Positions 9,533-61,089 are shown, counted from the stretch's first letter. The stretch: 64,000 bases of DNA from Heterodontus francisci (GCF_036365525.1 NC_090387.1:88887691-88951690), one strand, 5' to 3'. Notes: generated by a model not told the origin, from the letters alone. Numbers and translations are program-made.

Positions 9533-9581
9533 ATGAGTGGAGTACTTTGGAGCATGTGTTTCCTCGGAATTTTGTATCCAG
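9533..9581 (+). CDS. IgSF receptor gene 1, exon 1 (signal peptide)
   Basis: ATG at 9533 gives MSGVLWSMCFLGILYP followed by a phase-1 donor CCAG|GTAGCT. The peptide is hydrophobic and leader-like, and the phase matches the V exon acceptor at 9852-9853. Confidence 0.75.
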
Positions 9582-9853
9582 GTAGCTTTTTTATGTTTGG
9601 TGTACATTAACCTTTCCTGAAAAAGAAACGGAATATGACATCGATCTTACAGTAAATATACAACGGAACATTGTTTATTTAGGTAGACTTTTATGTAATA
9701 TTACCAGCATCCTTGCGGAGGGAAATATGTGTGAGAAAGCAAATGTTATTTAACTTTACTTAGACAATAATTGTGATAGTTCGGTAAATCCCATTACTAT
9801 TATATTAATGTGCTGCACGCACAGTAATATTTGGTGGTTTCTTTCGTTGATAG

Positions 9854-10165
9854 TTCCCGTGGACACCTCGGGCAAGGTGACTCCAGGCATGGCACAAATG
9901 AAGGCGCTCAGAGGTACAAACATTACCTTGAAATGCCCTTTCCCCTTTCACTTGGACTATTCAAACGTAAAAGTTTACTGGTTGAGAAAGGAAAACGGTA
10001 CCTTACTGCAAGAAGATAGAAGAACACTGTTTCAGGTAAAGAAAGGTGGCGCCTACCTTCACCTTCTGAATGTGACTATGCAGGATGCCGGAACGTATCA
10101 GTGTGGAGCCAAATATCACGATCAAATGGTTGTAAAAGGAACTCTGGTGCAACTTGTTGTATATG
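9854..10165 (+). CDS. IgSF receptor gene 1, V-set Ig domain exon
   Basis: Acceptor TTGATAG| and donor TATG|GTAAG, phase 1/1. Translation VPVDTSGKVTP...NITLKC...VYW...LHLLNVTMQDAGTYQC...KGTLVQLVVY shows the B-strand Cys, C-strand Trp and DxGxYxC of a V-set domain. Sequons NIT, NGT, NVT. Confidence 0.92.
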
Positions 10166-10976
10166 GTAAGAGCCAGTGGAACAAGTATCTTCAGGAGTAT
10201 GGTTGGTATGAAGTTAATGCTGATTTTCACAAGCAATTTCAATAGGGAAATGCCCTGCCTGTAAAACAGTACGGCGTTCTATTGTTGAAAGAAAAACGTA
10301 TTCCAAAATATGGAACAGTTCCCATTTCCAGAATCTTTGGAAAAAACTGACCTCAGACCGACATCATTAACTTTACTTTAATTCTAAGTGTCAGGGTGAA
10401 CAATCTTGTGGTTATTTGCAATGTTATAAATGTTCAAAGACCAATGCATTATTCTGAAAGAAGTAGAAAGTTTCATTCCTACCATTTGGACGGTGCGCTT
10501 ACAGTTTCTGAGATTTAGATAAAATTCCTGAACCGACATTCGCTGAAACGGGAAAAGAGGTACACCATAAAACAAGTGAAGCAGTTCAGACTGAGGATCT
10601 AACTGGAACATTTCTGTTCGGAAGCAGAACGTTTTCTCTATCGAACCACAGGCCGCATGTTGTACTATTACTATAGCTTTAGCACATCATACATATAACT
10701 AGCACGTGGATATTGATTTTTTAAAAAGTCCTATTGTTCATACATGTTTGAGCATAACTGTAATAGAGCCATACTGTAGTGGAGACAACTCTAAAAATCA
10801 GGTCTCTGCTTAGAGTGAAGAATTATTTGATTTGGCTCCAGCGAGAATCAATAATAATTATTAATGCAACTACCACGCTCAGACACATGTGCAGGTTAAT
10901 TTTTTTAAAAAAGCAATGAGGAGATGGAGTACGGTCAAATAATTTGTATTATTTCCTTACGCTCTTTTCCATTTAG

Positions 10977-11282
10977 CTGCACCCGCTCCCCTCAATATTG
11001 TCTGCATGCCATCCGAACGAGCTTCGTCAATCTTTCTGAGACTCCAGTGCCGAACCGCTGCATTTTACCCGAAGGAATTTAACCTCACCTGGCATAAAAA
11101 TGCGACGGAAATAGTGGCAGGATTTCGAACTGAACAAAAGGCAACGGAAGAGGGGCTGTATAAAGTGATCAGCTCTTTCGACGAGACACAACCGATCGAG
11201 CACGGCACTGTTTACACCTGCCACGTGTATCACATTTCAAATTCAATTCCAACAAATGCCAGCTACATTGTTGCTAACACAG
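10977..11282 (+). CDS. IgSF receptor gene 1, C1-set Ig domain exon
   Basis: Acceptor CTTTTCCATTTAG| and donor ACAG|GTACT, phase 1/1. LQCRTAAFYPKEFNLTWHKN...GLYKVISS...YTCHVYH matches the C1-set CxxxxFYP, W and YxCxVxH pattern. Sequons NLT, NAT, NAS. Confidence 0.92.
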
Positions 11283-12633
11283 GTACTGTTATATCACACG
11301 TGCTACATTTATCGATTTTTACGCAGTTCTCGGCTTTCTATCGCACTTCATGTGTTATTGCAAACAAATGTGGAAAGAGTTTTTTTTACCCGAAATAACT
11401 TTACTGCGGTTGTATCACAGCTGCGATTTTTCAGTTATAGACGGAAACAAACTGAGAAAGGTTTAGGGCTATATTGTATTGCGTTAAGACAGTTTAGACG
11501 ATACTTAATTGAAATTGTTCGAAATTGTAAAGGCGAATGACCTAGTAAATGGGGAAACAAGTATTTGCTGCTTAGAGAATCTGTTACAAGATGGCATACA
11601 TTCAGGATACTCACCAACAGGAGGAAGAGAGCAGAAATGTTTCATTTTACCGACACCAAAAGTGATGTCCCTAACAACTATATAGAGCAGGACCGATCAC
11701 ATCTCTCAAATGCCTCGTGACTCTCAATTCCAGTTAGTCTCAACTGAATGGGCTCTTTTTAGGTTCACAATAAATTATCATCGATTCTAGCGGATGTGTA
11801 AATATGTTGGCTGCCTGCCACAACTACCGACTATATTCTCCTTTAGTCCCAAATCCTGAGTCTAACTCTGTTCAAAGTAAAGGAAGGAGCATACTGTCGT
11901 TACGGGGTGTTGGCAAAGATTCCCTGATAAGCCATAGGAACCAAGCATAACCAACTGCGTACGACCATTTTTTAAGTTATTAGGTTGGCAGTTCAGACAA
12001 ACCACATTTGCACCAATCAGAAGATCATCCGGCTCACTTCAAAATTATTTCATAAAGCTAATTAAAAGCCTAATTAAATGTGTTTCAAATACTTGCGAGT
12101 ACAGTTTAAGCAGAAAGGTCATAGTGGCTTCTGACCTGAGATTTAGTAACTTCAAAATATAGCAGTACAAGCAGCTGGAAGGTTTTCCGGGGACACAGTG
12201 CGAAGCGAATTAAGACATTTACCATTTGGAGTTAGAAAGAACTACCAGGTCGGGTTCAGCACGGATTCTAACTATAATATTTATTGAACATGTTCAGTTA
12301 TTTATCAGCCGTAGTCTCTAATCATTCAGAAACATTTCGTTTGAATTATGTTCTTCAGATTGTATTTCTAGTACCGCTAAATGCAACGCAAAGGGGCTGT
12401 CTTTACCAAAGCGTTGACGATTTCTTAACAAATAAAAATCAGGAAAATTCTTATCCCAGTGTCTTTGACCTTAAAACGATATATTGAGCAGTTCTGATAT
12501 GCAAAACGTAAAATAGATTTATAAACCATCAAGTGTATACATTTTGGCTCCGGGTTCGAATTAAAAGTATTATCAAAGTGGTATGACTTCTGCCTCTGAG
12601 CTGTGAATTAATGATTACCGATACCTTTTCTAG

Positions 12634-12748
12634 ATTATCGCTCAGTCCTCCCCGTCCACTTGATTTATCGAACCGCAGTTGGGATATTGGTAATTATTAC
12701 ACTAATGGTGATCATGGTCAACCACATTACATCAGAAAACGTCCATAG
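12634..12748 (+). CDS. IgSF receptor gene 1, transmembrane exon
   Basis: Acceptor CCTTTTCTAG| (phase 1) and donor ATAG|GTAAG (phase 2). Translation DYRSVLPVHLIYRTAVGILVIITLMVIMVNHITSENVH contains a ~20-aa hydrophobic helix with Arg (CGA 12669-12671) at its N-terminal part. Confidence 0.85.
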
Positions 12749-13404
12749 GTAAGAGAATTTTAAGACCGAATTAAGACAGAATTTTAAGACAGAACATCAT
12801 TGGTGAATTTACAACATGGAAGGAAGATGCGATATTTGCTCATCAATTTGAGAGATTATTACTCAATAAAAGATGATTATGAATGCCCTGAAACCATGCA
12901 AAAATCCAAGAAGTGATATCAGAGTCGGTGTAATTTTGGATGAAAGCAGCAGTTAAAACCGGCTATCATTTTGTACTCAATTCCTAAATGGGACATTGCG
13001 TGTAACCAGCGAATCACAGCTCAGAAGGAGCACACCAAGCCCATCAATCCACCACTTTCTCTTTGAAAGTGCGAGCAGTTTATTCCCAATACCCTGCTCT
13101 TTCACCATAGTATTGCTTCTTTTTCCTGCTCACGTATTAGTCCAATTCCTTTGGAAACTTACAATTGAATCTGCTTCCACCTCCAAATCTGTCAGTGTTT
13201 TCCAGATAATAAAATCTTGCTGCCTGAAACAAAACTCCAAACAAAACTCTCTTATTTGCACAATTACATTGAGACTGTACCCACTGGTTGTCGATCCTCC
13301 TGTCAATGGAAGTATTTTTTTTTCATATTGACTCCATTAAATAAAAAAAACATTTTGAAATGTGAACATCTCATTTTTTTTATTGTTCTTTCATGTGAAC
13401 ATCT

Positions 13405-16400
13405 CTTTTTTTATTATTCTTTCATGGGATGTGGGCGTCTCTGGCTAGGCCAGCATTTATTGCCCATCACTAATTGCCCTTGAGAAGGTGGTGGTGAGTT
13501 GCGTTCTTGAACCGTTGCATTTCAATGTGAGGTAGGCACACCCACAGTGCTGTTAGGAAGTGAGTTCCAGGATTTTGACCCAGTGACAGCGAAGGAACGG
13601 CAATTTAGTTCCAAGTCAGGATAGTCTGTGGCTTGGAGGGGAACTTGCAGGTGGTGGTGTTCCTATGCATTTGCTGCCCTTGTCATTCTCGTTGGTAGAG
13701 GTCGCGGGTTTGGAAGGTGCTGTCTAAGGAACCTTGGTGCGTTGCTGCAGTGCATCTGGTAGATGCTACACACTTTGCCACTGTACATCAGTGGTGGAGT
13801 GAGTGAATATTTTTGGATGGGGTGCCAATCAAGCAGGCTGCTTTGTCCTGGATGGTGTCGAGCTTCTTGAGTTTTGTTGGAACTGCACCCATCCAGGCAA
13901 GTGGAGAGTATTCCATCACACTCCTGACTTGTGCCTTCAAGATGGTGAACAGGCTTTGGGGATTCAGGAGATGAGCTACTCGGTACAGGATTCCTAGCCT
14001 CTGACCTGGTCCTGCAGCCACGGTATTTATAAGGCTACTCCAGTTCAGTTTGTGGTCAATGGCAACCCTAGGATGTCGATAGTGGGCAATTAAGCGATGG
14101 TAATGCCATTGAATGTCAAGGGAGATGGGTAGATTCTCTCTTGTTGGAGATGGTCATTGCCTGGCACCTGTGTGGCACAAATGTTACTTGCCACTTATTA
14201 GCCAAAGCTTAGACATTGTCCCGGTCTTGCTGCATTTCTACACAAAGTGCTTCAGTATCTGAGGAGTCGTGAATGGTGCTGAACATTGTGCAATCATCAG
14301 CGAACATCCCCACTTCAGACCGTATGATTGAAAGAAGGTTATTGATGAAGCAGCTGAAGATGGTAGACCGAGGGCACAACCCTGAGGAATACTTACAGTG
14401 ATGTCCTGGAGCTCAGATGATTGATCTCCAACAACCAAAACCATCTTCCTTTGTGTTAGGTATGACTCCAAACAGCGGAGTGTTTTCCCCCTGATTCCCA
14501 TTGACTCCAGTTTTGCTGGGGCTCATTGATGCCTTGATCGGTCAAAGGCTGCCTTGATGTCAAGGGCAGTCACTCTCACCTCACCTCTTGAGTTCAGCTT
14601 TTTTATCCATGATTGAGCCAAGGTGGTAATGAGGTCAGCAGCTGAGAGGCCATGGTGGAACCCAAACTGAGTGTCAATGAGCAGATTATTGCTAAGCAAG
14701 TGCTGCGTGATGCCACTGTTGATGACACCTTCCATCAGTTTACTGATGAGTGAGAGCAGACTGATGGGGCGATAATTGGCCGGGTTGGACTTGTCCTGCT
14801 TTTTGCGTACAGGACATACCTGGGCAACTTTCCACATTGCCGGGTAGATGCCAGTGTTGTAGCTGCACTGGAACAGCTTGGGGCGCAGCAAGTTCTGGAG
14901 CACAGGTCTTCAGTACTATTGCCAGCACATTGTCAGGACCCATAGCCTTTGCAGTATCCAGTGCCTTCAGTCGTTTCTTGATATCACGCAGAGTGAATCG
15001 AATAGGCTGACGTCTGGCACCTGTGATGCTGGGGCCGTCAGGAGGAGGCCGAGATGGATCATCAACTCGGTACTTCTGGCTGCAGATTGTTGCACATCCT
15101 TCAGCTTTATCTTTCACACTGATGTGCTGGGCTCCCCCATCATTGAGGATGGGGATATTTGTGGCGCCACCTCCTCCAGTTAGTTGTTTAATTGCCCATC
15201 AACATTCACGGCTGGATGTGGTAGGGCTGCAGAGCTTAGATCTGATCCATTAGTTATGGGACTGCTTAGCTCTGTCTATCGCATGCTGCTTATGCAATTT
15301 GGCATTCAAGTAGTCCTCTGTGTAGCTTCACCAGGCTGACACCTTATTTTGAGGTCTGCTTGGTGCTGCTCCTGACATGCCCTCCTGCACTCTTCATTGA
15401 ACCAGGATTGGTCTCCTGGCTTGATGGGAATGGTAGAGAGGGGGATATGTCGGGCCATGAGGTTACAGATTGTGGTTGAGTATAATTTTGTTGCTTCTGA
15501 TAGCCCACACCGCTTCATGGATGTCCAGTTTTGCATTTCTAGACTTGTTCGAAATCTATCTCATTTAGCACGGTGATAGTGCCACACAACACGATGGACG
15601 GTATCCTCAAAGTGAAGGCAGGAACTCATCTTCACAAGGACAGTGCGGTGGTCACTCCTACCAATATTGACATGGACAGATGCATCTGTGGCATGTAGAT
15701 TGTTGAGGACGAAGTCAAGTATGTTTTTTCCTGTTGCTGGTCCCCTCATCAGGTGCAACAGACTCAGTCTAGCAGCTATGTCCTTTAGGACTCGGCCAGC
15801 TCGGTCAGTTGTGGTGTTACCGAGCCACTCTTGGTGATGTACATTGAAGTCCCCCACCCACAGTACATTCTGCGCCCTTGCCACCCTCAGTGGTTCCTCC
15901 AAGTGGTGTTCAACATGGAGGAGCACTGACGCATCAGCAGAGGTAGGGCGATAGGTGGTAATCAGCAGGAGGTTTCCTTGCCCATTTTTGACCTGATGCC
16001 ATGAGACTTCATGGGGTCGAAGTCAATGCCGAGGACTCCCGGGGCAACTCTCTCCCGACTGTATACCACTGTGCCGCCAATTCTGCTGGCTCTGTCCTGC
16101 CAGTGTGACAGGACATACCTGAGGATAGCAACGGCAGTGTCTGGTACATTGTCTATCAGTTATGATTCCGTGAGTGTGATTATGTCGGGCTGTTGCTTGA
16201 CTAGTCTGTGAGACAGCTCTTCCAACTTTGGCACAAGCCGCCAGATGTTAGTAAAGCGGACTTGCAGGGTCGACAGTGCTGGGTTTACCATTGTCGTTTC
16301 CGGTGCCCAGGTCAATGCCGGGTGGTCTGTCCAGTTTCATTCCTTTTTATTGACTTCGTACAACTGAGTGGCTTGATGGGCCATTTCAGAGGGCATGTAA

Positions 16401-16650
16401 GAGTCAACGGCATTGCTATGGATCTGGAGTCACGTGTCGGCCAGACCAGGTAAGGACAGTAGGTTTCCTTCCCTAAAGGAAAACAGTGAACCAGATTTTT
16501 TTTTTTTATAACAATCGACCATGGTTTCATGAGACTAGCTTGCTTTTTAAATCCAGATTTATGTGGTGGGATTTGAACCCATGCCCCCAGAGCAATATTT
16601 TGGCTCTATGGGTTATTAGTCTAGTTACAATACTACTACACCACTGCCTC
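13405..16650 (-). mobile_element. LINE family B, near full-length decayed copy (tRNA-like head, APE, RT, tail)
   Basis: APE motifs (TNI.GL..PDII.LTES, GDFNVHH, LDFVL, SDH) and RT motifs (NYRPISLL, LDIKAAFD, PQG). Pol III A/B-box-like head at 16560-16650. Confidence 0.85.
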
Positions 16651-16729
16651 CTCTCATCACCTTCCAGATTTTCTGCGCTATGAAGAGCACTCGCAGCTTC
16701 TTCATTTTCTGAACATAGCTGAAGTTCCT

Positions 16730-17505
16730 CCAAGTAACATTCACGCCACACAAGTGCCAGGCAATGACCATCTCCAACAAGAGACAATCTAACCATCTTC
16801 CCTTGACATTCAACGGCATTACTATCGCTGAATCCCCCACTATCAACATCCTAGCGGCTGCCATTGACCACAAACTGAACTGGAGTAGCCACATTAATAC
16901 CTTAACTACAAGAGCAGGTCAGAGGCTAGGAATCGTGAGGCAAGTAGCTCACCTCCTGACTCCCCAAATCCTGTCCACCATCTACTCGACACAAGTCAAG
17001 AGTGTGATGGAATACTCTCCACTTGCCGGGATGGGTGCAGCTACAACACTCAAGAAGCTCGACACCATCCAGGGCAAAGCAGCCCGCTTGATTGGTACAA
17101 ACATTCACTCCCTCCACCATCGACGCACAGTGGCAGCAGTGTGTACCATCTACAAGATGCACTGCAGCAATTCACTAAGGCTCCTTCAACAGCACCTTCC
17201 AAACCCGCGACCTCTGCCAACTAGAAGGACAAGGGCAGCAAATGCATGGAAACACCACCACCTGAAAATTGCCCTCCAAGTCACCCACCATCCTGACTTG
17301 GAACTATATCGCCGTTCCTTCACTGTCGTTGGGACAAAATCTTGGAACTCCCTTGCTAACAGCACTGTGAGTATACCAACCCCAAATGGACTGCAGCGGT
17401 TCAAGAAGGCAACTCACCACCACCTTCTCAAGGGTAATTAGGGATGGGCAATAAATGCTGGCCTGGCCAGCGACGCCTACATCCCATGAAGGAATTAAAA
17501 AAAAC
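16730..17505 (+). mobile_element. LINE family B, 3' fragment
   Basis: ORF 16764-17441 matches the family B C-terminus. Ends CCCATGAAGGAATTAAAAAAAA. Confidence 0.88.
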
Positions 17506-18125
17506 AGGTGTTACTTTCGTAAACTCCCTTTGATATTTCCCGAAGTCCTAGTGTACTTCCAAAAGTGTGTTATTTAGAAATGTGCTCTAGCTGACGCTTA
17601 GCCGGTGATTTATAAAGGTGATGTATCGCTGATTTGCTTTTGTAATCTATGCCTCTATTTAAAAAGCCCATGATCCTCTATGTTTTAATAGCTTTACCAA
17701 CTTGTCTTGTCACACATATTTCTCACGAATTCGTTGAGCACCCATTTATACTAACTCAAATTCTCTATTAATTTTCAGCCTGTAATTTATTTTTGGTTTT
17801 CATTTTTTTGTTTGTTTTCTTATAGAATCATTTCCATTGTCTGGGTTCCCTGCCAATTTACAATGTAATTCAGGGTATACATTGGTCCGAAAAAATCAAA
17901 GCGCTGCCACCAGTTTTCCGCCTTAGGCTCGAGAAGAGAGAACCAGTGAACAAGCCATAAAAAGTCGTAAATTCAAAAAATGGTCATTTCCATCTAGTTT
18001 TACTGGGAATTACCATGGCGGTGCATATAAATAAGAATAGGGGTTACTAGAATATGATTTTTTAAGACGTCTATCCATGATAATTCCGAAAGGTCTCTCC
18101 TGATTTTGCACTTTTATTTGAACAG

Positions 18126-18210
18126 GAGTCCAGACGAAGAGAGCAGGAAAGACGATGTAAAATGTGGATAGTTAAGCCGGAACGGCGGGAGAGTCCAGCG
18201 AAATATGAAG
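18126..18210 (+). CDS. IgSF receptor gene 1, putative cytoplasmic exon containing an in-frame stop
   Basis: Acceptor CTTTTATTTGAACAG|. Read in phase 2: (R)SPDEESRKDDVKCG*LSRNGGRVQRNMK, with TAG at 18169-18171, ending at a phase-0 donor AAG|GTCATA. The exon is purine-rich and charged. Exons 1-5 give a 275-aa product to the stop. Confidence 0.55.
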
Positions 18211-21200
18211 GTCATAGTTGAAAAGAACAGTTCATTGAGATTCTAAATGTTAATTTCCACGAACGGTTGAATTTGGTCCTCAAACAGTTGGGCGGTTTTT
18301 AGTTTGGGATTATTTCCTTGACTGATGAAGTATGATAGTGAACTCTAAATTCTGTATTTGCGAATTCCTGCTGTTTGCTCACGATGGTCCAGTGAAAACC
18401 CCACTGTAAAGGCTCAAACGCGATTTATCTCACTTCTCCCGAGTTCTGGCGTCTCCTGTCAGAGTTAGGACTGGAGATCAGGAGAATGGCGCGAAATTTT
18501 ATCTTGAAGTTTAGAATCTGGTTTGTTATGTTCTTCAAATAAAAATGTATGTGAAAGAATATACCACTACCAAGAAGATACTGAACACACAAATCAAATG
18601 GTACTTAGGCAAGGCAAAATATGTGAAAACTTTGTAACAGAAGCACTAACCATTAAAAAAAATGGGCAATCTTCCGGAACAAGAATCACAATACTAGCTG
18701 AGTAATTCGCAAAAATTTGGTTCCCATTATCAATCCAAAAATATATCTGACAATGAATGGTGGAATACATTCTACGATATAGAGATGGCTGACGAACTAA
18801 TTAGTGACACATCAATTTGATTAAACTACTTTCCTGAAATACTATAATAATAGCCTTCTCAGTGAAACGTAATTGGCTCATTCAAGAAGTCTCTGTTTGC
18901 TGTGAGGCACAAGACTGACAATCGGGATTGATTCTATGCTGATGAAAGCGAGCCACCTAGATTATTCTGAGAGCTAAAATGAAAAGGCAATTTCTCCGTA
19001 TGAAAGGGATTACAGCGTCCTGGTGAGACCGATCCTGGAAACATCTCGAGGGATGTGCAATGGGATCCAATGGTTGTAGGAAATCTGATATGTTAATACT
19101 TAAGAAAAAAATATATTCATAACAGTCCCGCAGCTTATGGAAATTATGCCAAATGCGATGCAAGAAGCTATAGGAGGATTTTCTGTTGTTTTCATTATTA
19201 GCAAATGTTACATTCCAATAAACTGACAACAAATCAATTGCCTATAGAGAAATATTTACAAATAATAGTAATTTACCTGGAAAACAATTATCCAATACAT
19301 CTTTGAACAACAAACGACAGATGTAGTATGGAAGATAATTTAAAACAATAAATCTGTAAGGAAATCATAGGCGAAATTTAGATAGAAAGGGGGATTCCTA
19401 CGAAAAGAAAAAAAATAACTCTAAATCTTCCCAATACGTTAGACGTGAAAAGTTCGGAAACTATGCATTAGGCTTGCCAACAATGGAGTGAGCATCGCGT
19501 TTAATAAGATCTCGATATTTGTTACCCAATACAGGGAAGGGGACCTATGGTTTGGGAGCATCGTTCTTCTATATGCAAATAGAAAGAGAGCAGAGGTGTA
19601 GCTGTTGGTAATGCTACAGAATCGCTGAATGCTAGGCTGTATGTTTGGTCAAGTTACGATTTATTTCAAGTAGACAAATGGTGCAATTCCAGATACTTTG
19701 AAAGGTGGAAACTGAAATCAATTTATCACTCAGCATTGTGTACAAGTAGTGCAAGTCTGAGATACAAAATGGACCTGTATGTCAGAATCACATATAATCA
19801 TTGGTGAAGACTACAGTAAAAAAACATTTAATAAGAGTGTGTCATGATTGGTGGGTTGTTCAGGCGAATGCATGTTATAAATTGCGTGCTAATTGTGAAA
19901 ACAATGAAAGTCCGGAAAGGAACAGTTATGTATCATCTAATAGCTAGTCCGTCTTTATGAGACATGCCTTAAGTACTGTGTCATGTCTCTCTTATTGTTG
20001 GTAACTGATCGGTTGCGTATTTCTAGTGTTTCCTGTTTTTAAGTGAGATTTGGAAGGTCTTTTTTCTCTTTAATTGTACTGCAGAAATTCTGCTTATTTG
20101 GAGTACTATTGTACATCATGGGAGACGCTGACAATTAAAGTAAAGGGATCGGCTTTGAAAAGAAGCTTCAGATGAGGAAGGTGTTGTCCTTTGATCATGA
20201 CTGCAAGATTCTTAAACAGTTAGCTAAATACTTTGAGCATTATGTGGCCTTACAGCCGTTAATATGTTGGTTTCTGGGTGGAAAGCCATAAGTTGCAAAC
20301 ATCCATGCAGTCAACCACACACTTAACTGGTTGTTCAACCATGAGTGCACTGAGTTGCAGTATGTACGTGCACAAAGGAAGGACTGGCGGGGCGACAGCT
20401 GAATAGACGCATATTTCTATTATTATCTATCAATTGTGTAATGTCTTGGCGGAGAAATACTGAACGAGATGCTGTGTAAATGACCAAGGCCTGAAACAAG
20501 CATTACAAAAACTGCAGCAGAACTATTTATTGAACATAATGTACACCTACATAATGTAGTAGAAATAGCAGCCTCAAGCAATCCAGTACCTAGACACAAG
20601 ACATTGCGAAAGTTACAATTGTACAAAAGATCCAGGATGTGGCAAAAACATACCGCGTATCTATTGGGCAACATCCGTGATAAATAAGTTTTGCTTTCCA
20701 CAAAGCTTGCTGAATTCAATGGAACTAATTGAAGCAGGCTTGCCTGTGGCTAATATATAGTCGCAGGTTGACTGGTAACACATCGTGGCAGGGAAGCTTG
20801 GAGTTTGGTGACGAGCCTGCCAAACAGTTTAATTATTTCTTACCTTGGCAGCTTTCTTTCTCTATCTCATTGTTTCTACATTTTTCAAAGGTCTTTCACC
20901 TCGGCTACATCGCTTTGGGTTATGTGCTAATGGCTTCCATGTCAATATTGGAATTATGAGACAAGAAAAGGTTTATGGTCTATCTTCTATTACCCTTGTA
21001 ATAGATTCAATTCAATGATAATAGAATTATTGAAAAATCGTAGCAGTCAATATCTAGAAATTAGTCAACAACAAATCTGACATGACGCGAGAAATTATTG
21101 GAATGTTTTGGAAAACTCGAAAAGATTAAGCATGAGGAGAATAGCTAATGTGGCCGATGTGTAAATTAAATATTTAGGAGAAGCAGTTAATTACTGTCGA

Positions 21201-21252
21201 GTTCGGGAAAGCAACAAAAGGCATCTGGCATTGCTTCCTCTTCACTTTTTTC

Positions 21253-33038: not shown

Positions 33039-33059
33039 AAACCAGCGGTAGCAGTGCCG

Positions 33060-33497
33060 GGGAGGGGGGGGGAGAAAGAGGGAGGGGAGGAGAAAGAGGG
33101 AGAGAAAGAGGGAGGGGAGAGGGGGAGAAAGAGGGAGGGGAGAGGGGGAGAAAGAAGGAGGGGAGAGGGGGAGAAAGAAGGAGGGGAGAGGGGGAGAAAG
33201 AGGGAGAGGTCAGGAAGGGGGGAGGGGGAGAAAGAGGGAGGGGGAGAAAGAGGGAGAGGGAGGGGGGAGAAAGAGGGAGAGGGAGGGGGAGGAGAAAGAG
33301 GGAGAGGGAGGGGGGAGAGAGAGGGAGGGGGGAGAAAGAGGGAGAGGGGAGAAAGAGGGAGAGGGGGAGAAAGAGGGAGAGAAAGGGGGAGGGGGAGAGA
33401 AAGGGAGAGGGGGGTGAAAGAGGGAGAGGGAGGGGTAAGGAAGGGGGAGGGGGAGAGCTGGGGAGAGAGGGAGGAAGGGGAGAGAGTGGGGGGGGGA
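33060..33497. repeat. Polypurine (G/A) low-complexity tract
   Basis: About 440 bp almost entirely G/A, with GGGGGAGAAAGAGGGA-like units. Confidence 0.9.
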
Positions 33498-36431: not shown

Positions 36432-36575
36432 ATTCCCCAAATGGAAGCTAAAGAAGGACTGATCTACTGTGCTCTAGATTTCGTCGGTCAGAAGAAAGGT
36501 CCCAGACCTACGCGGCACGAAGACACCTTAGTATATGTCCACGTGCAGTTCAAGAAACAGAACAGCATGCTCTGA
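36432..36575 (+). CDS. Terminal cytoplasmic exon with two ITIM-like motifs (probably the last exon of receptor gene 1 or a relic of it)
   Basis: Acceptor TTCCAG|, phase 0: IPQMEAKEGLIYCALDFVGQKKGPRPTRHEDTLVYVHVQFKKQNSML*. LIYCAL and LVYVHV fit (I/V/L/S)xYxx(L/V). AATAAA follows at 36808 and 36896. Confidence 0.7.
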   Translation: MPQMEAKEGLIYCALDFVGQKKGPRPTRHEDTLVYVHVQFKKQNSML

Positions 36576-41800: not shown

Positions 41801-42991
41801 GTTGTCTATATGGACTTTAGTAAAGCCTTTGACAAGGTTCTGCATGGCAGACTGGTGCAAAAGGTGAATCACATGGGATCAGAGGTGAGCTGGCAAGATG
41901 GATACAGAACTGGCTCAGTCACAGAAGACAGAGGGTAACAGTGGATGGGTGTTTTTTTCTGAATGGAGGGATGTGACTAGTGATGTTCCGCAGGGATCAG
42001 TGCTGGGACCTTTTCTGTTTGTAGTATATATAAATGATTTGGAGGAAAATGTAGCTGGTCTGATTAGTAAGTTTGCAGATGACACAAAGGTTGGTGGAGT
42101 TGCGGATAATGATGAGGACTGTCAGAGGATACAGCAGGATATAGATCGGTTGGAAACTTGGGCGGAGAAATGGCAGATGGCGTTTAGTCTGGACAAATGT
42201 GAGGTAATGCATTCTGGAAGGTCTAATGCAAGTGGGAAGTATACAGTAAATGGCAGAACCCTTAGGAGTATTGACAGGCAGAGAGATCGAGGTGTACAGG
42301 TCCACAGGTCACCGAAAGTGGCAACGCAGGTGGATAAGGTAGTCAAGAAAGCATACGGCATTCATCGGTCAGGGCACAGACTATAAAAATTGGCAAGTCA
42401 TGTTGCAGCTATACAGAACCTTAGTTAGGCCACACTTAGAATATTGCGTGCAATTCTGGTCGCCACACTACCAGAAGGATGTGGAGGTTTTGGAGAGGGT
42501 ACAGAGGAGGTTTACCACGATGTTGCCTGGTCTGGAGGCCATTAGCTATGAGGAGAGGTTGGATAAATTCGTGAGTGTTTTCACTGGAACGACAGAGGTG
42601 GAGGGGCGACATGATAGAGGTTTACAAAGATATGAGCGGCATGGACAGAGTTGATAGTCAGAAGCTTTTTCCCAGGGTGGAAGAGTCAGTTACTAGGGGA
42701 CATAGGTTTAAGGTGAGAGGGGCAAAGTTTAGAGGGGATGTGCGAGGCAAGTTTTTTACACAGAGGGTGGTGAGTGCCTGGAACTTGCTTCCAGGGGAAG
42801 TGGTGGAATCAGATACGATAGCGACGTTTAAGAGGCATCTTGACAAATACATGAATAGGAAGGGAATAGAGAGATACGGGCCCCGGAAGTGCAGAAGGTG
42901 TTAGTTTCGGCAGGCATCAAGATCGGCGCAGGCTTGGAGGGCCGAATGGCCTGTTCCTGTGCTGTACTGTTCTTTGTTCTTTTTTCTTTGT
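38875..42991 (+). mobile_element. Near full-length CR1 LINE (ORF1 ZnF+SGNH esterase, ORF2 APE-RT, frameshifted)
   Basis: ORF 39105-39989 (C..C, GNS, GTND, DGLH) and ORF2 fragments 40392-42904. TSD TATCAT at 38869-38874 and 42992-42997. It is inserted into an older minus-strand CR1 (38660-44352). Confidence 0.92.
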
Positions 42992-42997
42992 TATCAT

Positions 42998-50200: not shown

Positions 50201-53200
50201 CAGAACTCAGAAATAGGAAGGGTGCGGTAACAATGTTGGGGCCGAACTAAGGGCCTCCCAACAGCGAGCGTGAGATAGTGGTACAAATATGTAAACAGAT
50301 TATGGAAAGCTGTAGGAGCAACAGGGTGGTGGTGATTGGAGATTTTAATTTTCCCAACATTGACTGGGATTCACTTAATGTTAGAGGTCTAGATGGAGCA
50401 GAATTTGTTTGGAGCATACAGGAGGTTTTTTTACAGCAGTATGTAAATAGTCCAACTCGGGAAGGGGCCATACTGGACCTGATGTTGGGAAATGAGCCGG
50501 GCCAGGTGGTTGACGTTTCAATAGGGGACTACTTTGGGAATAGTGATCACAATTCCGTAAGTTTTAGAATACTCATGGACAAAGACGAGAGTGGTCCTAA
50601 AGGAAGAGTGCTAAATTGGGGGAAGGCCAACTATACCAAAATTCGGCAGGAGCAGGGGAACGTAGATTGGGAGCAGCTGTTTGAAGGGAAATCCACATTT
50701 GATATGTGTGAGGCTTTTAAAGAGAGGTTGATTAGCGTGCAGGTGAGACATGTTCCTGTGAAAATGAGGGGTAGAAATGGCAAGATTAGGGAACCATGGA
50801 TGACAGGTGAAATTGTGAGACTAGCGAAGAGGAAAAAGGAAGCATACATAAGGTCTAGGCGGCTGAAGAAAGACGAAGCTTTGAATGAATATCGGGATTG
50901 TAGGCACAATCTGAAACGAGGAATTAAGAGGGCTCAAAGGGGTCATGAAATGTCTTTAGCAAACAGGGTTAAGGAAAATCCCAAAGCCTTTTATTCATAT
51001 ATAAGGAGCAAGAGGGTAACTAGAGAAAGGATTGGCCCACTCAAGGACAAAGGAGGAAAGTTATGCGTGGAATCAGAGAAAATGGGTGAGATTCTAAACG
51101 AGTACTTTGCATCGGTATTCACCGAGGAGAGGGACATGACGGATGTTGAGGTTAGGGACAGATGTTTGATTACTCTAGGTCAAGTCGGCATAAGGAGGGA
51201 GGAAGTGTTGGGTATTCTAAAAGGCATTAAGGTGGACAAGTCCCCAGCTCCGGATGGGATCTATTCCAGGTTAGTGTGGGAAGCGAGAGAGGAAATAGTT
51301 GGGGCTTTAACAGATATCTTTGCAACATCCTTAAACACGGGAGAGGTCCCGGAGGACTGGAGAATTGCTAATGTTGTCCCCTTGTTTAAGAAGGGTAGCA
51401 GGGATAATCCAGGTAAATATAGACCGGTGAGCCTGACGTCAGTGGTAGGGAAGCTGCTGGAGAAGATACTGAGGGATAGGATCTATTCCCATTTGGAAGT
51501 AAATGGACTCATCAGTGATAGGCAACATGGTTTTGTGCAGGGAAGGTCATGTCTTACCAACTTAATAGAATTCTTTGAGGAAGTGACAAAGTGAATTGAT
51601 GAGGGAAGGGCTGTAGATGTCATATACATGGACTTCAGTAAGGCGTTTGATAAGGTTCCCCATGGTAGGCTGATGGAGAAAGTGAAGGTGCATGGGGTCC
51701 AAGGTGTACTAGCTAGATGGATAAAGAACTGGCTGGGCAACAGGAGACAAAGAGTAGCAGTGGAAGGGAGTTTCTCAAAATGGAGACGTGTTACCAGTGG
51801 TGTTCCACAGGGATCCGTGCTGGGACCACTGTTGTTTGTGACATACATAAATGATTTGGAGGAAAGTATAGGTGGTCTGATTAGCAAGTTTACAGACGAC
51901 ACTAAGATTGGTGGAGTAGCAGATAGTGAAGGGGACTGTCAGAGAATACAGCAGAATATAGATAGATTGGAGAGTTGGGCAGAGAAATGGCAGATGGAGT
52001 TCAATCAGGGAAAATGCGAGGTGATGCATTTTGGAAGATCCAATTCAAGAGTGAACTATACAGTAAATGGAAAAGTCCTGGGGAAAATTGATGTACAGAG
52101 AGATTTGGGTGTTCAGGTCCATTGTTCCCTGAAGGTGGCAACGCAGGTCAATAGAGTGGTCAAGAAGGCATACGGCATGCTTTCCTTCATCGGACGGGGT
52201 ATTGAGTACAAGAGTTGGCAGGTCATGTTACAGTTGTATAGGACTTTGGTTCGGCCACATTTGGAATACTGCGTGCAGTTCTGGTCGCCACATTACCAAA
52301 AGGATGTAGATGCTTTGGAGAGGGTGCAGAGGAGATTCACCAGGATGTTGCCTGGTATGGAGGGCGCTAGCTATGAAGAGGGGTTGAGCAGATTAGGATT
52401 ATTTTCATTAGAAAGACGGAGGTTGAGGGGGGACCTGATTGAGGTGTACAAAATCATGAGAGGTATAGACAGAGTGGATAGCAAGAAGCTTTTTCCCAGA
52501 GTGGGGGATTCAATTACAAGGGGACACGAGTTCAAAGTGAAAGGGGAAATGTTTAGGGGGGATATGCGTGGCAATTTCTTTATGCAGAGGGTGGTGGGTG
52601 CATGGAACGCTTTGCCAGTGGAGGTGGTAGACGCGGGCACGATAGCGTCTTTTAAGATGTATCTAGACAGATACATGAATGGGCAGGAAGTAAAGAGATA
52701 CAGACCCTTAGAAGATAGGCGACAGGTTTAGATAGAGGATTTGGATCAGCGTAGTCTTGTCGGGCCGAAGGGCCTGTTCCTGTGCTGTAATTTGCTTTGT
52801 TCTTTGTTCTTTAGATCTCGCATTATACAATGAGAAAGGTTCATTAATAATCTTGTGAAAGAACCTTTAGGGATGAGTGACCATAATATGATAGAATTTT
52901 ACATTAAGTTTGAAAGAGAGCTGGTTCAATCTGAAGCCAGGGTGTTAAATTTGAACAAAGGAAAATAGAAGGTATGAGGGGCAAATAGCTGAGGTGGTTT
53001 GGGGAAATATATTAAAAGGTATGACAGTACATAGACAATAGATAGTCTTCAAATAATTATTCCATAGTTTACAGCAACTATTCATTCCTTCATCGCACAA
53101 AAATCCCAAAAGTTAAGGCAGTTAACCGTGGCTAAAAAGGGGAGTTAAGGATTGTATGAGATAAAAAAAAAGAAAAGGCCTATAACATTTGCAGAAATAT

Positions 53201-54993: not shown

Positions 54994-57900
54994 TAGAACA
55001 TAGAACATAGAACATTACAGCGCAGTACAGGCCCTTCAGCCCTCGATGTTGCGCCGACCTGTGAAACCATCTGACCTACACTATTCCATTTTCATCCATA
55101 TGTCTATCCAATGACCACTTAAATGCCCTTAAAGTTGGCGAGTCTACTACTGTTGCAGGCAGGGCGTTCCACGCCCCTACTACTCTCTGTGTAAAGAAAC
55201 TACCTCTGACATCTGTCCTATATCTATCACCCCTCAACTTAAAGCTATGTCCCCTCGTGTTTGCCATCACCATCCGAGGAAAAAGGCTCTCACTATTCAC
55301 CCTGTCCAGCCCTCTGATTATCTTATATGTCTCTATTAAGTCACCTCTTCTCCTCCTTCTCTCTAACGAAAACAACCTCAAGTCCCTCAGCCTTTCCTCG
55401 TAAGACCTTCCCTCCATACCAGGCAACATCCTAGTAAATCTCCTCTGCACCTTTTCCAAAGCTTCCACTTCCTTCCTATAATGCGGTGACCAGAACTGCA
55501 CGCAATACTCCATGTGCGGCCGCACCAGAGTTCTGTACAGCTGCAGCATGACCTCGTGGCTCCTAAACACGATCCCCCTACTAATAAAAGCTAACACACC
55601 ATATGCCTTCTTAACAGCTCTATTAACCTGGGTGGCAACTTTCAGGGATTTATATACCTGGACACCAAGATCTCTCTGCTCATCTACACTACCAAGAATC
55701 TTCCCATTAGCCCAGTATTCTGCAATCCTGTTACTCCTTCCGAAGTGAATCACCTCACACTTTTCCGCATTAAACTCCATTTGCCATCTCTCAGCCCAGC
55801 TCTGCAGCCTATCTATGTCCCTCTGTACCCTGCAACATCCTTCGGCACTATCCACAACTCCACCGACCGTCGTGTCATCCGCAAATTTACTAACCCACCC
55901 TTCTGCACCCTCATCCAGGTCATTTATAAAAATGACAAACAGCAGTGGCCCCAAAACAGATCCTTGCGGTACACCACTAGAAACTATACTCCAGGATGAA
56001 CATTTACCATCAACCACCACCCTCTGTCTTCTTTCGGCTAGCCAATTTCTGATCCAAAGCACTAATTCACCTTCAATCCCATACTTCTGTATTTTCTGCA
56101 ATAGCCTACCATGGGGAACTTTATCAAACGCCTTACTGAAATCCATGTAGACCACATCCACGGCTTTACTCTCATCCACCTGTTTGGTCACCTTGTCAAA
56201 AAACTCAATGAGGTTTGTGAGGCACGACCTACCCTTCACAAAACCGTGCTGACTATCTCTAATGAACTTATTCTTTTCAAGATGATTATAAATCCTATCT
56301 CTTATAACCTTTTCCAACATTTTACCCACAACCGAAGTAAGGCTCACAGGTCTATAATTACCAGGGCTGTCTCTACTCCCCTTCTTGAACAAGGGGACAA
56401 CATTTGCTATCCTCCAGTCTTCCGGCACTATTCCTGTCGACAATGGCGACATACAAATCAAGGACAAAGGCTCTGCAATCTCCTCTCTGGCTTCCCAGAG
56501 AATCCTAGGATAAATCCCATCTGGCCCAGGGGACTTATCTATTTTCACACTTTCCAAAATTGCTAACACCTCCTCCTTGTGAACCTCAATCCCATCTAGC
56601 CTAGTAGTCTGTATCTCAGTATTCTCCTCGACAACATTTTCTTTCTCCACTGTAAATACTGACGAAAAATATTCATTTAACACTTTCCCTATCTCCTCCG
56701 ATTCCACACACAACTTCCCACTACTATCCTTGATTGGCCCTAACCTATCTCTCGTCATTCTTTTATTACTGATATACCTATAGAAAGCCTTAGGGTTTTC
56801 TTTGATCCTATCCGCCAATGACTTCTCGTGTCCTCTCCTTGCTCTTCTTTTCTCTCCCTTTAGATCCTTCCTGGCTAGCTTGTAACTCTCAAGCGCCCTA
56901 ACTGAGCCTTCACGTCTCATCCTAACATAAGCCTTCTTCTTCCTCTTGACAAGCGCTTCAACTTCTTTAGTAAACCACGGCTCCCTCGCTCGACAACTTC
57001 CTCCCTGCCTGACAGGTACATACTTATCAAGGACACGCAGTAGCTGCTCCTTGAATAAGCTCCACATTTCGATTGTGCCCATCCCCTGCAGTTTCCTTCC
57101 CCATCCTACGCATCCTAAATCTTGCCTAATCGCATCATAATTTCCTTTCCCCCAGCTATAATTCTTGCCCTGCTGTATATGCCTGTCCCTGCCCATCGCT
57201 AAGGTAAACCTAACCGAATTGTGATCACTATCACCAAAGTGCTAACCAACTTCTAAATCTAACACCTGGCCGGGTTCATTACCCAGTACCAAATCCAATG
57301 TGGCATCGCCCCTGGTTGGCCTGTCTACATACTGTGTCAGAAAACCCTCCTGCACACACTGGACAAAAACAGACCCATCTAAAGTACTCGAACTATAGTA
57401 TTTCCAGTCAATATTTGGAAAGTTAAAGTCCCCCATAACCACTACCCTGTTACTCTCGCTCCTGTCAAGAATCATCTTTGCTATCCTTTCCTCTACATCT
57501 CTGGAACTATTTGGAGGTCGATAGAAAACTCCCAACAGGGTGACCTCTCCTCTCCTGTTTCTAACCTCGGCCCAGACTACCTCAGTAGACGAGTCCTCAA
57601 ACGTCCTTTCTGCCGCTGTAATACTTTCCTTGATTAACAATGCCACACCACCGCCCCCCCCCCCCGCCCTCTTTTACCCTCTTCTCTGTTCTTAGTCAAA
57701 CATCTAAATCCCGGCACCCGCAACATCCATTCCTGTCCCTGCTCTACCCATGTCTCTGAAATGGCCACAACATCGAGATCCCAGGTACCAACCCATGCTG
57801 CAAGCTCACCCACCTTATTCCGGATGCTCCTGGCGTTGAAGTAGACACATTTTAAACCAAGCTCTTGCTTGCCAGTGCCCTCTTGTGTCCTTATAACCTT

Positions 57901-59283
57901 ATCTCTGCCCTCACTACTCTCAACATCCTGCACACTGGAACTACAATTTAGGTTCCCATCCCCCTGCTGAATTAGTTTAAACCTCCCCCCCCCCCCGCCC
58001 CCCCGAAGAGCACTAACAAACCTCCCCCCCAGGATATTGGTACCCCTCTGGTTCAGGTGAAGACCATCCTGTTTGTAGAGGTCCCACCTACCCCAGAAAG
58101 AGCCCCAATTATCCAGGAAACCAAAATGCTCCCTCCTACACCATCCCTGCAGCCACGTGTTCAACTCATCTCTCTCCCTATTCCTCACTTCGCTAGCACG
58201 TGGCACGGGCAACAACCCAGAGATAACAACTCTGTTTGTTCTCGCTCTAAGCTTCCACCCTAGCTCCCTGAATTTCTGCCTTAAATCCCCATCTGTCTTC
58301 CTACCTATGTCGTTGGTGCCTATGTGTACCACGACTTGGGGCTGCTCCCCCTCCCCCTTGAGGATCCCAAAAACACGATCCGAGACCTCACGTACCCTGG
58401 CACCTGGGAGGCAACACACCAACCGTGAGTCTCTCTCGTTCCCACAAAACCTCCTATCTGTTCCCCTAACTATGGAGTCCCCAATGACTAATGCTCTGCT
58501 CCTCTTACCCCTTCCCTTCTGAGCAACAGGGACAGACTCTGCGCCAGAGACCTGTATCCCATTGCCTACCCCTGGTAAGTCGTCTCCCCCAACAGTATCC
58601 AAAACGGTATACCTGTTGTTGAGGGAAACGGCCACAGGGGATCCCTGCACTGCCTGCTGGTTCCCTCTCCTTCCCCTAACGGTAACCCATCTACCTTCTT
58701 CTTTTACCTGAGGTGTGACTGCCTCTCGATAACTCCTCTCAATAATACCCTCCACCTCCCGAATGATCCGAAGTTCCTCCAGCTCCAGCTCCAGTCCTCG
58801 AGGAGCTGGAGCTGGGTGCACTTCCCGCAGATGCAGTCAGCAGGGACACCCTTGGCGACCCTTACCTCCCACATTCTGCAGGAGGAACATTCAACTGCCT
58901 TAACCTCCATTCCCACTATTCTAAATTCCCAAGTTTTTAACCAATCACACGATAAAACAAAAAGAGAAATAGAAAAAGCCTTACCTTACCTACACACAAC
59001 CGAGTCCTTTTTTTGGTAAGAGGAGGAGGGCGGGTGGGAGACACTACAAGAGTAGTGTCTCGGGTTCAGAAACAGCCCAAATATATAGGTTTCTACTTAC
59101 CCAGCAGTCCCTGCTCCACCGAAACTCCCGATGAAATTGACTTCCCAGCTGTTCACTCCTCGCTCGCAATGCCTGTGCTCCTGGAAAAGCCAGCAGTCCC
59201 TGCTCCACCGAAACTCCCGATGAAATTGACTTCCCAGCTGTTCACTCCTCGCTCGCAATGCCTGTGCTCCTGGAAAAGCTGCA
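54994..59283 (-). mobile_element. Full-length CR1 LINE, second subfamily
   Basis: 706-aa RT ORF 55076-57196 (PQGSVLGP, FADD), EN 57242-57646, ORF1 esterase 57634-58916 with frameshifts. (AGAACAT)n tail. Its 5'UTR is homologous to that of the 48501 copy. Confidence 0.95.
59101..59278. repeat. Two exact 89-bp tandem monomers at the 5' end of the CR1
   Basis: CCAGCAGTCCCTGCTCCACCGAAACTCCCG...CTGGAAAAG occurs at 59101 and again at 59190. Confidence 0.9.
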
Positions 59284-59599
59284 CAACGAAAACTGAGGCG
59301 ATCGATTGCAGAGTTACTTCCTCAGTCGTGCGCGGCATCCCCCTGGCCTTCCATGACGTTTGGTACAGTTCAGTGTCCGCAACTCCTCCGCAAACTATTC
59401 TCTCCTGTGCCGGTTTTGTATTTGGTTGAACTTCTATCAGGCCCGTAGTAGGTTGTTTACTTTCGGCATTGCTAATTTACATATTGCTGCAGCTTGTCAA
59501 TGGCCTTCCATCTAATTCCTTTCTAGATCCACCCTTTCCCATACTCGATGTTTCGACGTTGGCTACTTCGTAACCCTCCGTTACTGGCAATTGATGGAA

Positions 59600-59880
59600 T
59601 TATGGAAACCATGGGATAACTTCCATATGTATGCTGAAGACTCCCAGCGTTACGACACCATGTCCATCTTAGTGTTGTCTACCTACTTGACTGTTTGCTG
59701 CCGTGGGTTAATCAGAATATTTTAAATTTAAGGTTTGTCAAACTAAAACTATCCATTTTGCCTCCAACCGCGAAGTCCACATTGTAGCTCCAATGTGACT
59801 CGGTGCAACTGAACTGGCAAGTGAGCACTCTCGTAATCAGTTTCACCATGAACTGCGCTTGAGACTTATATATTACACGA
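59600..59880 (+). mobile_element. Ancient L2-like RT remnant
   Basis: TTCCATATGTATGCTGAAGACTCCCAG translates to FHMYAEDSQ (compare L2 FHxYADDTQ). Confidence 0.45.
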
Positions 59881-60494
59881 CGTGAATTTTGATAGATGTT
59901 TCTATCTGCTTCAACATTGAAGAGTACTTCTCTGAGAAGTCAGGTTCAGGATGCATGAAAAGAGTTTCTCTTGTTGATTGAAGCATTGTTCTTTACCAGA
60001 AGATCCATTCTTTAATGAGTTTAGCTTCAGTTCCATTGTATGTGAAATTACCCCCTTTCCCATTGCGATAATTGAGGATTCTTTTAGACTGACGTAAAGC
60101 TGGTTCCTCTTCTAACCATGTACCAGTTGGACATAGCATGTTGTCATGTGTTAATTGACAACGCATAGTATTATCTCACGTGTACACAAAGCGACCAGAA
60201 GAACAGCAGTAGATTGGAATTCAAATTGTTATTTATCTAAAGATTAATATAAAATATTGTAAGTCTCTAAGGTACATCGCTTTCTGAAGTAATGATGGTT
60301 TGTTCGTGCAGTCAACAAATTGGTACTTTGTATTTTTAATGAGTGCGAGTTGCATGAATGGAACACCAAACGGAAACGCTCCGCATTGGAGGAGGAGTTC
60401 ATTCGAGGGATGCAACTTGGTTTAAGAGTATTAAAACGTAATACGTCACTGTAACAGTTGTCAGATTGGAGTAACGAAAACCTTGATCTCAGTG

Positions 60495-60561
60495 ATGCGT
60501 TTAATCTTGGTTCTAAACGTCCTGTTTCAGTATTGTGCCACACTGGGGATTTTCTGCAGAG
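60495..60561 (+). CDS. IgSF receptor gene 2, signal-peptide exon
   Basis: MRLILVLNVLFQYCATLGIFCR followed by a phase-1 donor AGAG|GTACGT. The layout matches gene 1 (short intron before the V exon). Confidence 0.75.
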
Positions 60562-60768
60562 GTACGTGACTGATTTTATACAACAGGTTCGCTTCTGCAG
60601 TAGAGAGTTTTCTGAAATTGAACAACATTTTTTTGTTCTCTTTGTTCTGTTTTATTGGTCACATTTTAAATTTTGTGATTTATCTTCCTCCTCTGCTTTC
60701 TTCTGATTTTAACTGCTCGAATCCTGTGTTTCATGTAAATATTCTGCTACAATATCTATTTCCCATAG

Positions 60769-61089
60769 CTGCCCAAGATGGTTCTCTGACAGTCACACAG
60801 TTACCTGATTTTATAGCGGTGCACAGGGGTGAAAACGTTACCCTATACGGCAACGTATCTGGATTGCAGGCGAACGAGGACATAATTGTTTACTGGAGCA
60901 AGACAGTTTCCAATTCATCCGAAGCAATAAGGCCTGACACCCAAAAAATATCTCGTGGTCTACAGAATGGAGATTTTTTCCTTCATCTGCGTAGTGTGAG
61001 TGTCCAAGATTCTGGAGTCTACATCAGTAGAGTGATGGCCGGGGGATCCAAAATTTCTGATGGATGCGGCACAGAACTTGTTGTATGTG
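60769..61089 (+). CDS. IgSF receptor gene 2, V-set domain exon lacking both canonical Cys (possibly a pseudogene)
   Basis: Acceptor TTTCCCATAG| and donor TGTG|GTAAG. AAQDGSLTVTQ..RGENVTLYG..VYW..FLHLRSVSVQDSGVYIS..GCGTELVVC is paralogous to the gene 1 V exon (shared VYW, LHL..V..QD.G.Y, LVV, G|GTAAG). Confidence 0.8.

Follow-up and report, generated by a model that had tools for sequence, protein, structure and literature searches.

A probable activating-type gene of a SIRP-like, paired V(J)-C1 receptor family in the horn shark Heterodontus francisci

Immunoglobulin (Ig) domains of the C1 set are almost confined to antigen receptors, major histocompatibility complex (MHC) molecules and a few relatives (PMC2785349). 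Genes in which a V and a J part are already joined in the germline and are followed by a C1 domain are investigated as remnants of the gene which the RAG transposon once entered (PMC12227049, PMC10751288). Here, we describe such a gene, gene 1, in a stretch of 64,000 nucleotides from the horn shark Heterodontus francisci (GCF_036365525.1 NC_090387.1:88887691-88951690), which we call the window and in which positions are counted from the first letter. Gene 1 is a non-rearranging V(J)-C1-transmembrane receptor gene on the + strand, and it is expressed. It is probably the activating-type partner in a paired activating/inhibitory receptor system, part of a multigene V(J)-C1-transmembrane family of cartilaginous fish that is SIRP-like in architecture.

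The closest described systems each share part of this design. SIRP proteins are defined by a V domain followed by two C1 domains and have been linked to antigen receptors (PMC2785349). Gene 1 and its relatives resemble them in an N-terminal V domain that is encoded, J-like G strand included, by a single exon and precedes a C1-set domain, and in the occurrence of pairs with near-identical ectodomains, one with a tail containing immunoreceptor tyrosine-based inhibitory motifs (ITIMs) and the other with a short tail and a basic residue in the transmembrane segment. In SIRP-beta this residue is a lysine, which pairs with DAP12, while in gene 1 it is an arginine. Unlike SIRP, neither gene 1 nor the aligned family proteins have a V-C1-C1 arrangement, containing one C1 domain instead of two, and the identity to SIRP-alpha is about 30% over one third of the protein. 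UrIg and UrIg2, also specific to cartilaginous fish, similarly have a non-rearranging V exon spliced to a C1-set domain (PMC12227049, PMC10751288; PDB 9dmx). However, UrIg2 is built of ten Ig domains and assembles into Fc-like homodimers (PMC12227049), whereas gene 1 has only V and C1, with the transmembrane exon directly after C1, and its family has ITIM tails or charged transmembrane segments. The B7 proteins B7-H6 (NCR3LG1) and CD276 consist of a V and one C1-like domain encoded by phase-1 exons, and some family members have been automatically named after them. The shark family differs in occurring in activating and inhibitory forms and in keeping a J-like G-x-G motif; B7 proteins are ligands and are not known to form activating/inhibitory pairs. 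Finally, the KIR, LILR, PILR and CEACAM1/3 receptors also combine shared ligand-binding domains with opposite signalling modules and undergo exchange or homogenisation of ectodomain exons, but they use C2, I or V domains, without the C1 set. CEACAM pairs of Xenopus are an example of such paired receptors (PMC5112662).

Gene 1 is made up of five exons on the + strand, all with GT-AG borders, which together encode 275 amino acids. The leader exon (9533-9581) encodes MSGVLWSMCFLGILYP and ends in a phase 1 donor (9581|gt). The V(J) exon (ag|9854 to 10165|gt, 312 nucleotides) and the C1-set exon (ag|10977 to 11282|gt, 306 nucleotides) both run from phase 1 to phase 1. The stalk and transmembrane exon (ag|12634 to 12748|gt) encodes D-YRSVLPVHLIYRTAVGILVIITLMVIMVNHITSENVH; introns 1-3 are all of phase 1, and the donor of this exon is of phase 2. 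The last coding exon (ag|18126, 18126-18171) encodes R-SPDEESRKDDVKCG, with the stop codon at 18169-18171, and its join to the transmembrane exon reads ...ENVH-R-SPDEESRKDDVKCG-stop. The 3' untranslated region continues past 18171, with an AATAAA at 18538-18543. The borders at 9581, 9854, 10165, 10977, 11282 and 12634 and the length of 275 amino acids had been predicted by an earlier, sequence-only reading of the window, and all are present with their AG and GT signals and matching phases. The junction codons, ...LYP-V-PVDT and ...VANT-D-YRSV, are the same as in relatives, and the residues at the junctions agree with those of the family proteins P0160 (H. francisci), P0164 and P0180 (both Heptranchias) and P0022 (Chiloscyllium). 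The leader shares 75% identity with the P0160 leader and 69% with the leaders of both P0008 and P0180. In the transmembrane segment (LIYRTAVG...), the arginine is in the outer part and an N-H pair is at the inner end. The cytoplasmic tail, 25 amino acids long, is without tyrosine motifs and is weakly similar to the tail of P0166 from Scyliorhinus torazame.

All protein-level searches were performed exon by exon. The V exon matches the Pfam V-set at 4.6e-11, above the gathering score, and by itself it matches PD-L1. The C1 exon matches the Pfam C1-set (PF07654) at 5.7e-9, with 36.6 bits against a cut-off of 21; the runner-up family is C2-set_3, at 3e-3. The C1 hallmark motifs are present as FYPKEFNLTW (FYP...W) and YTCHVYH (YxCxVxH), and the best PDB matches of this exon, all of them C1 domains, come from Ig constant regions, MHC alpha-3, UrIg2, IgNAR and SIRP. 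The V exons of rearranging Ig and T-cell receptor (TCR) genes end before the G strand, carry a recombination signal sequence (RSS) and are joined to a separate J. This was not observed for gene 1 or for a second leader and V(J) exon further downstream (gene 2, discussed below). In each, the G strand is inside the V exon, as KGTLVQLVVY in gene 1, and no RSS was found beside either V exon; the scan for a heptamer, 12-nucleotide spacer and nonamer gave one chance-level match at 46915, and the scan with a 23-nucleotide spacer gave none. The sequence-only reading had likewise placed the whole V domain, G strand included, in one exon lacking an RSS, with a J-like GCGTELVV in gene 2 and a degenerate GTLVQLVV in gene 1; exon reading and RSS scans agree with it on each of these points. 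Neither a regular-expression scan nor a tblastn comparison with some 45 family proteins revealed further Ig exons in the window. Two matches to YxCSVSH, at 48661-48681 (+) and 59034-59054 (-), were rejected as C1 exons, being short open stretches in inverted repeat copies. The translation of these copies, which contains Y(T/S)CSVSH, mimics the C1-set motif.

Gene 1 has a sister gene in the same species, XP_067906072 (P0160; isoforms XP_067906071-74), to which it is 98% identical in V and 87% identical in C1; its V is also 98% identical to that of P0001. P0160 has an uncharged transmembrane segment and a long tail with repeated LTYAAL ITIMs. Two signalling forms are present in the family. The inhibitory form has an uncharged transmembrane segment (..IAGCAAGA..) and a long tail with repeated LxYAAL ITIMs plus xVYAE motifs, while the second form, which includes gene 1, has a short tail and a transmembrane segment of the pattern R-(17-19 hydrophobic residues)-(D/N)H. 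The transmembrane exon of gene 1 is 85% identical to that of P0166, 67% to that of P0180, 64% to that of P0164 and 61% to that of P0022, and all four have both the R...(D/N)H pattern and a short tail. Judged by these identities, the activating-type transmembrane exon is conserved across shark orders. Because near-identical ectodomains are thus found with opposite types of transmembrane segment and tail, and because the transmembrane exon is shared with other sharks, we interpret gene 1 and its sister as partners in a paired system. This activating/inhibitory pairing is the key biology beyond what the sequence-only reading had seen.

In phylogenetic trees, the V and C1 domains of gene 1 are each sister to those of P0160 (support 100/99 and 100/97, respectively), within an elasmobranch clade of 14 rows. 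Grouping the activating-type ectodomains as one clade was rejected by the approximately unbiased (AU) test, with p-AU values of 3.7e-8 for V and 1.2e-4 for C1. The ectodomain exons and the signalling exons therefore differ in history, suggesting gene conversion, or exchange and homogenisation of exons, between the partners. Among the listed differences between gene 1 and its sister, 15 C1 codons are changed, 10 of them synonymously; both copies therefore look constrained, which fits purifying selection. With most of these C1 differences synonymous and the V domains 98% identical, the description of the cluster as diversifying, made from the sequence at the outset, is not supported.

By analogy with known paired receptors, the V domains of both partners would present the same V(J) ligand-binding face and bind their ligand through the loops. 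The inhibitory partner would recruit SHP-type phosphatases through its phosphorylated ITIMs. The transmembrane arginine of gene 1 would pair with an aspartate-bearing adaptor containing an immunoreceptor tyrosine-based activation motif (DAP12-, FcR-gamma- or CD3-zeta-like), and gene 1 would signal in the opposite sense on meeting the same ligand or one that mimics it.

Evidence for splicing comes from assembled RNA contigs of three runs of one sample, aligned to positions 9400-13300. The matches are from one run; the two other runs gave no contigs matching this interval. Contig record 2 (326 nucleotides, 0 mismatches) starts at 12711, reaches the donor at 12748 and then reads on with the letters found from 18127 onwards. 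Because it matches exactly, the splice from the transmembrane exon to the last exon of gene 1 (12748 to 18126) is in use. Contig record 1 (1063 nucleotides) has V joined to C1 (10165 to 10977) across a GT..AG intron. It shows 6 differences from the window in V and 23 in C1, departs from the window 15 nucleotides before the end of the C1 exon, and at its 5' end matches 8276-8305 (2 mismatches), not the gene 1 leader. Twenty-two listed differences reproduce residues of P0160 (R55S and H69Q in V; R14P, A42G, A55T, V63A and F67L in C1), and the loose ends code for SAGPLITINY and AVNKDVIPT, two stretches contained in the XP_067906071-74 isoforms. Because differences and loose ends match these isoforms, record 1 is the transcript of the sister gene in the same animal. 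Via this transcript, the V and C1 borders are real splice sites in the lineage of gene 1. Of the modelled junctions, 10165>10977 is thus confirmed in the sister transcript and 12748>18126 in gene 1; a lack of spliced RNA, which would have spoken against the sequence-only reading, did not occur.

Upstream, at 8249-8306 (+ strand; contig-matched part 8276-8306), the window has a sequence homologous to an alternative first coding exon of the sister gene, but with no in-frame ATG. It abuts a repeat copy that covers about 7900-8250. The sister isoforms XP_067906071/74 carry the corresponding alternative N-terminus, MVCYAELIKSAGPLITINY, which includes SAGPLITINY; such N-termini were seen in P0001 and P0175. 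The MVCYAELIKSAGPLITINY N-terminus is not a signal peptide; it may have entered the annotation as an artefact, from a 5' exon borne by a transposable element.

Gene 1 belongs to an expanded family, and the case of a single-copy orthologue of a known gene did not apply. For each of its V, C1 and transmembrane exons, the closest sequences are those of chondrichthyan V(J)-C1 family members (for instance, XP_067906072 and S. torazame scyTo_0012035), with which gene 1 shares the exon order. A HMMER scan of 1.84 billion representatives with the gene 1 V exon gave 473 matches, and every single-domain, full-length V match that was looked up came from a cartilaginous fish (Heterodontus, Heptranchias, Chiloscyllium, Scyliorhinus, Mustelus and Callorhinchus). 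When a horn-shark member and a family alignment were used as queries in word-index searches, further members appeared in Stegostoma, Hemiscyllium, Rhincodon and Cetorhinus, and in the rays Pristis, Hemitrygon and Mobula. The sole match outside the Chondrichthyes in these word-index searches was a rodent SIRP-alpha (1.5e-11, 30% identity over 35% of the query). In the searches made, relatives at useful scores are limited to Chondrichthyes (sharks, rays and chimaeras). The sequence-only reading had called the cluster SIRP-like and possibly lineage-specific; both descriptions hold, as SIRP-alpha is the nearest match in bony vertebrates and detectable relatives are confined to cartilaginous fish.

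Most family members keep a G-x-G, J-like G strand. The aligned family proteins each have a single C1 domain, and the cysteines C44 and C100 of their V domain (alignment A1) are invariant. Members are already present in the NCBI automatic annotation of several sharks, where they are called uncharacterized, SIRP-alpha-like, SIRP-beta-1-like, NCR3LG1-like, tapasin-related, CD276 homolog or lambda light chain-like. We ascribe these inconsistent names to automatic naming meeting an unplaced V-C1 protein. No paper describing a paired V(J)-C1 family of chondrichthyans was found in the literature searches made. The annotated horn-shark members that were seen are all on one record of 99.65 Mb, and at least four V lineages of the family are present on one horn-shark chromosome.

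A profile of 18 family members was compared with the PDB. Its best non-repetitive match is UrIg2 (1.2e-26), which also matches the gene 1 C1 exon at 1.6e-7, followed by SIRP-alpha (2.6e-23), CD276 (3.5e-22) and B7-H6 (7.5e-19), with Ig chains close by. From profile scores alone, SIRP-alpha is not separated from UrIg2, CD276, B7-H6 and the Ig chains, and on sequence grounds the family appears to stand on its own among V-C1 families. It is possible, but in our view doubtful, that it forms a previously undescribed lineage, sister to SIRP, B7-H6 and UrIg and descended from the V(J)-C1 ancestor that preceded RAG. If so, paired activating/inhibitory evolution with ectodomain exon exchange would have been operating already at the base of the jawed vertebrates, and the family would be a direct model of the non-rearranging relatives of antigen receptors before or beside Ig and TCR.

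Several points weigh against gene 1 being an activating-type partner as described. The RNA support consists of contigs from one sample, of which the library type was guessed, with none of the runs marked as certain RNA. The junctions from leader to V (9581>9854) and from C1 to the transmembrane exon (11282>12634) fall outside the contig coverage and are assigned by homology, and the product of gene 1 itself was not found among annotated proteins, being either unannotated or missed by the searches. The groups for the AU test were chosen after the tree had been seen. The signalling model would follow from analogy with SIRP-beta, NKp46 and similar receptors, and the arginine, near the outer edge of the membrane segment, might act in stop transfer and not in contacting an adaptor. 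Gene 1 and the sister gene may also be alleles of different haplotypes, like KIR3DL1/S1.

Other readings of gene 1 have to be considered. If the family encoded B7-type ligands with a B7-H6/NCR3LG1- or CD276-like V-C ectodomain instead of receptors, this would account for the NCBI names NCR3LG1-like and CD276 homolog of several members, for the profile matches to CD276 and B7-H6, for the PD-L1 match of the gene 1 V exon and for the ectodomain of a V and one C domain, as in B7-H6. We consider it quite unlikely: UrIg2 and SIRP-alpha score at least as well as the B7 proteins, most members have the G-x-G J-like strand, and the sharing of ectodomains between ITIM-tailed forms and short-tailed forms with a charged transmembrane segment is a hallmark of paired receptors. 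A different possibility is raised by an orphan cytoplasmic exon of the family type at 36432-36575 (+ strand), with 47 codons, the ITIMs LIYCAL and LVYVHV, a stop codon and a phase 0 acceptor. Its alignment with the P0160 ITIM unit scores 71, compared to 25 +/- 4.3 for shuffled sequences (about ten standard deviations), and blastp returns a value of 5.5e-6. No transmembrane exon was found beside it, and there is no uncharged transmembrane exon between gene 1 and 36432; a WAGCAA at 35545 was rejected as such an exon, being a chance match in a closed frame. Since the orphan exon is of the family type and follows gene 1 downstream in the same orientation, gene 1 could be a recently disabled inhibitory receptor that gained an arginine and an early stop and left its own ITIM exon stranded. 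This is very unlikely. The arginine-bearing transmembrane exon and short tail are kept in Scyliorhinus, Heptranchias and Chiloscyllium (61-85%), and because of this conservation the activating form must be old. Moreover, the splice from 12748 to 18126 is used in RNA, the phase 0 acceptor of the ITIM exon is incompatible with the phase 2 donor of the gene 1 transmembrane exon, splicing of which into the ITIM exon would give FPKWKLKKD-stop, and an uncharged transmembrane exon is missing from the interval, as stated. The best reading of the orphan exon is that it remains from an inhibitory member that was lost, or else belongs to a gene that has escaped recognition.

The second V(J) exon of the window also allows for more than one reading. 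Gene 2 consists of a leader exon (60495-60561, + strand), which encodes MRLILVLNVLFQYCATLGIFCR, a good signal peptide, and ends in phase 1, and of a V(J) exon (60769-61089, + strand, 321 nucleotides, phase 1 to 1), which includes the J-like DGCGTELVVC. Its V domain is 25% identical to that of gene 1 and best matches Callorhinchus family members (36-38% identity, 7e-17), and by these matches gene 2 apparently represents the 5' half of a gene that belongs to the wider family but has diverged strongly. The sequence-only reading had presented it as a paralogous V(J)-C1 gene about 51 kb downstream of gene 1 on the same strand. What stands is a leader and a second V(J) exon of the wider family; a close paralogue it is not, given the low identity and the loss of cysteines, and a C1 exon is not seen within the window. 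That gene 2 is a dead or dying relic of leader and V, leaving the window with one functional family gene and no tandem pair, is an alternative that we put only somewhat below an even chance. Both canonical cysteines are replaced (TLYGNV, VYISRV), the Pfam V-set match (4e-5) is, with 24.2 against 26 bits, just under the gathering score, and in the V tree gene 2 is a long, deep branch in no supported clade. No C1 or transmembrane exon was found in the remaining 2.9 kb of the window (61090-64000), where the sole match, a hydrophobic stretch at 61396, is unconvincing as a transmembrane exon. A word-index search (open reading frame 60570-61112, region 68-173) found no protein of 100-316 amino acids matching the V domain, a blank that proves little. 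On the other hand, the exon is open over 106 codons, with intact AG and GT signals, matching phase and a good signal peptide. The chance of 106 consecutive sense codons is about 0.006 by our arithmetic, and the remaining exons may be located past the end of the window. Ig domains that lack the disulfide exist, for example in CD2 and the SLAM family. Against the PDB, the gene 2 V domain gives values from 2e-5, for an engineered TCR single-chain variable fragment, to 6e-4 for CD79b, the best full-length match, in which QGCGTELRV resembles DGCGTELVVC of gene 2. This resemblance, together with the location of both genes on one strand in one cluster, could be taken to mean that gene 1 and gene 2 are chains of a germline-encoded heterodimer, TCR- or CD79-like, linked by extra cysteines in the G strand and hinge of gene 2. 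We regard such a heterodimer as extremely improbable, as gene 2 is matched far better by V(J)-C1 family members than by CD79b (7e-17 versus 6e-4) and gene 1 lacks a free cysteine at the corresponding place. The identification of gene 2 as CD79b was dropped on the same comparison.

With gene 1 read as the activating-type partner of an inhibitory sister, a whole family of germline-joined V(J)-C1 genes can be read as a SIRP-like paired receptor system, with conserved signalling exons and shuffled ectodomains. Gene 1 and XP_067906072 are a concrete, expressed pair on which ligand, adaptor and cell type can be tested. Paired-receptor evolution, usually seen as an arms race with pathogens, is suggested to date at least to early cartilaginous fish. 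No new principle is involved; the members were present, unnoticed and under misleading names, in automatic annotation.

The region between gene 1 and gene 2 contains at least three copies of long interspersed nuclear elements (LINEs) with esterase ORF1, endonuclease and reverse transcriptase domains, in agreement with the LINEs reported there from the sequence at the outset. One is located at 39105-42386 (+ strand), with an esterase ORF1 (GDSL) and an apurinic/apyrimidinic (AP) endonuclease. The two others, at 48830-52731 (+ strand) and 55076-58821 (- strand), have an esterase ORF1 (GDSL), an AP endonuclease and a reverse transcriptase; the latter match is 3e-37 in the - strand copy, which also has the longest open reverse transcriptase reading frame, of 706 amino acids. 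We propose that gene 1, gene 2 and the orphan ITIM exon mark a gene cluster under remodelling by LINE insertion. Other repeats in the window may mislead searches for receptor genes. Residues of about 1-130 of the horn-shark model XP_067905015 (P0101) match transposon copies at 6003, 14164-14747, 22052, 25436, 41958, 51733 and 55616, and this gene model has probably absorbed sequence from transposable elements. A purine-rich simple repeat at 33050-33490 (+ strand) has open-frame RGRGEGEKEGGERGRK units, which give spurious matches to basic receptor tails. By eye, 7900-8250 and 13405-14200 share a repeat (..ccatcacactcctgacttgtgc..gatggt..caggct..), which is probably the head of a short or long interspersed element.

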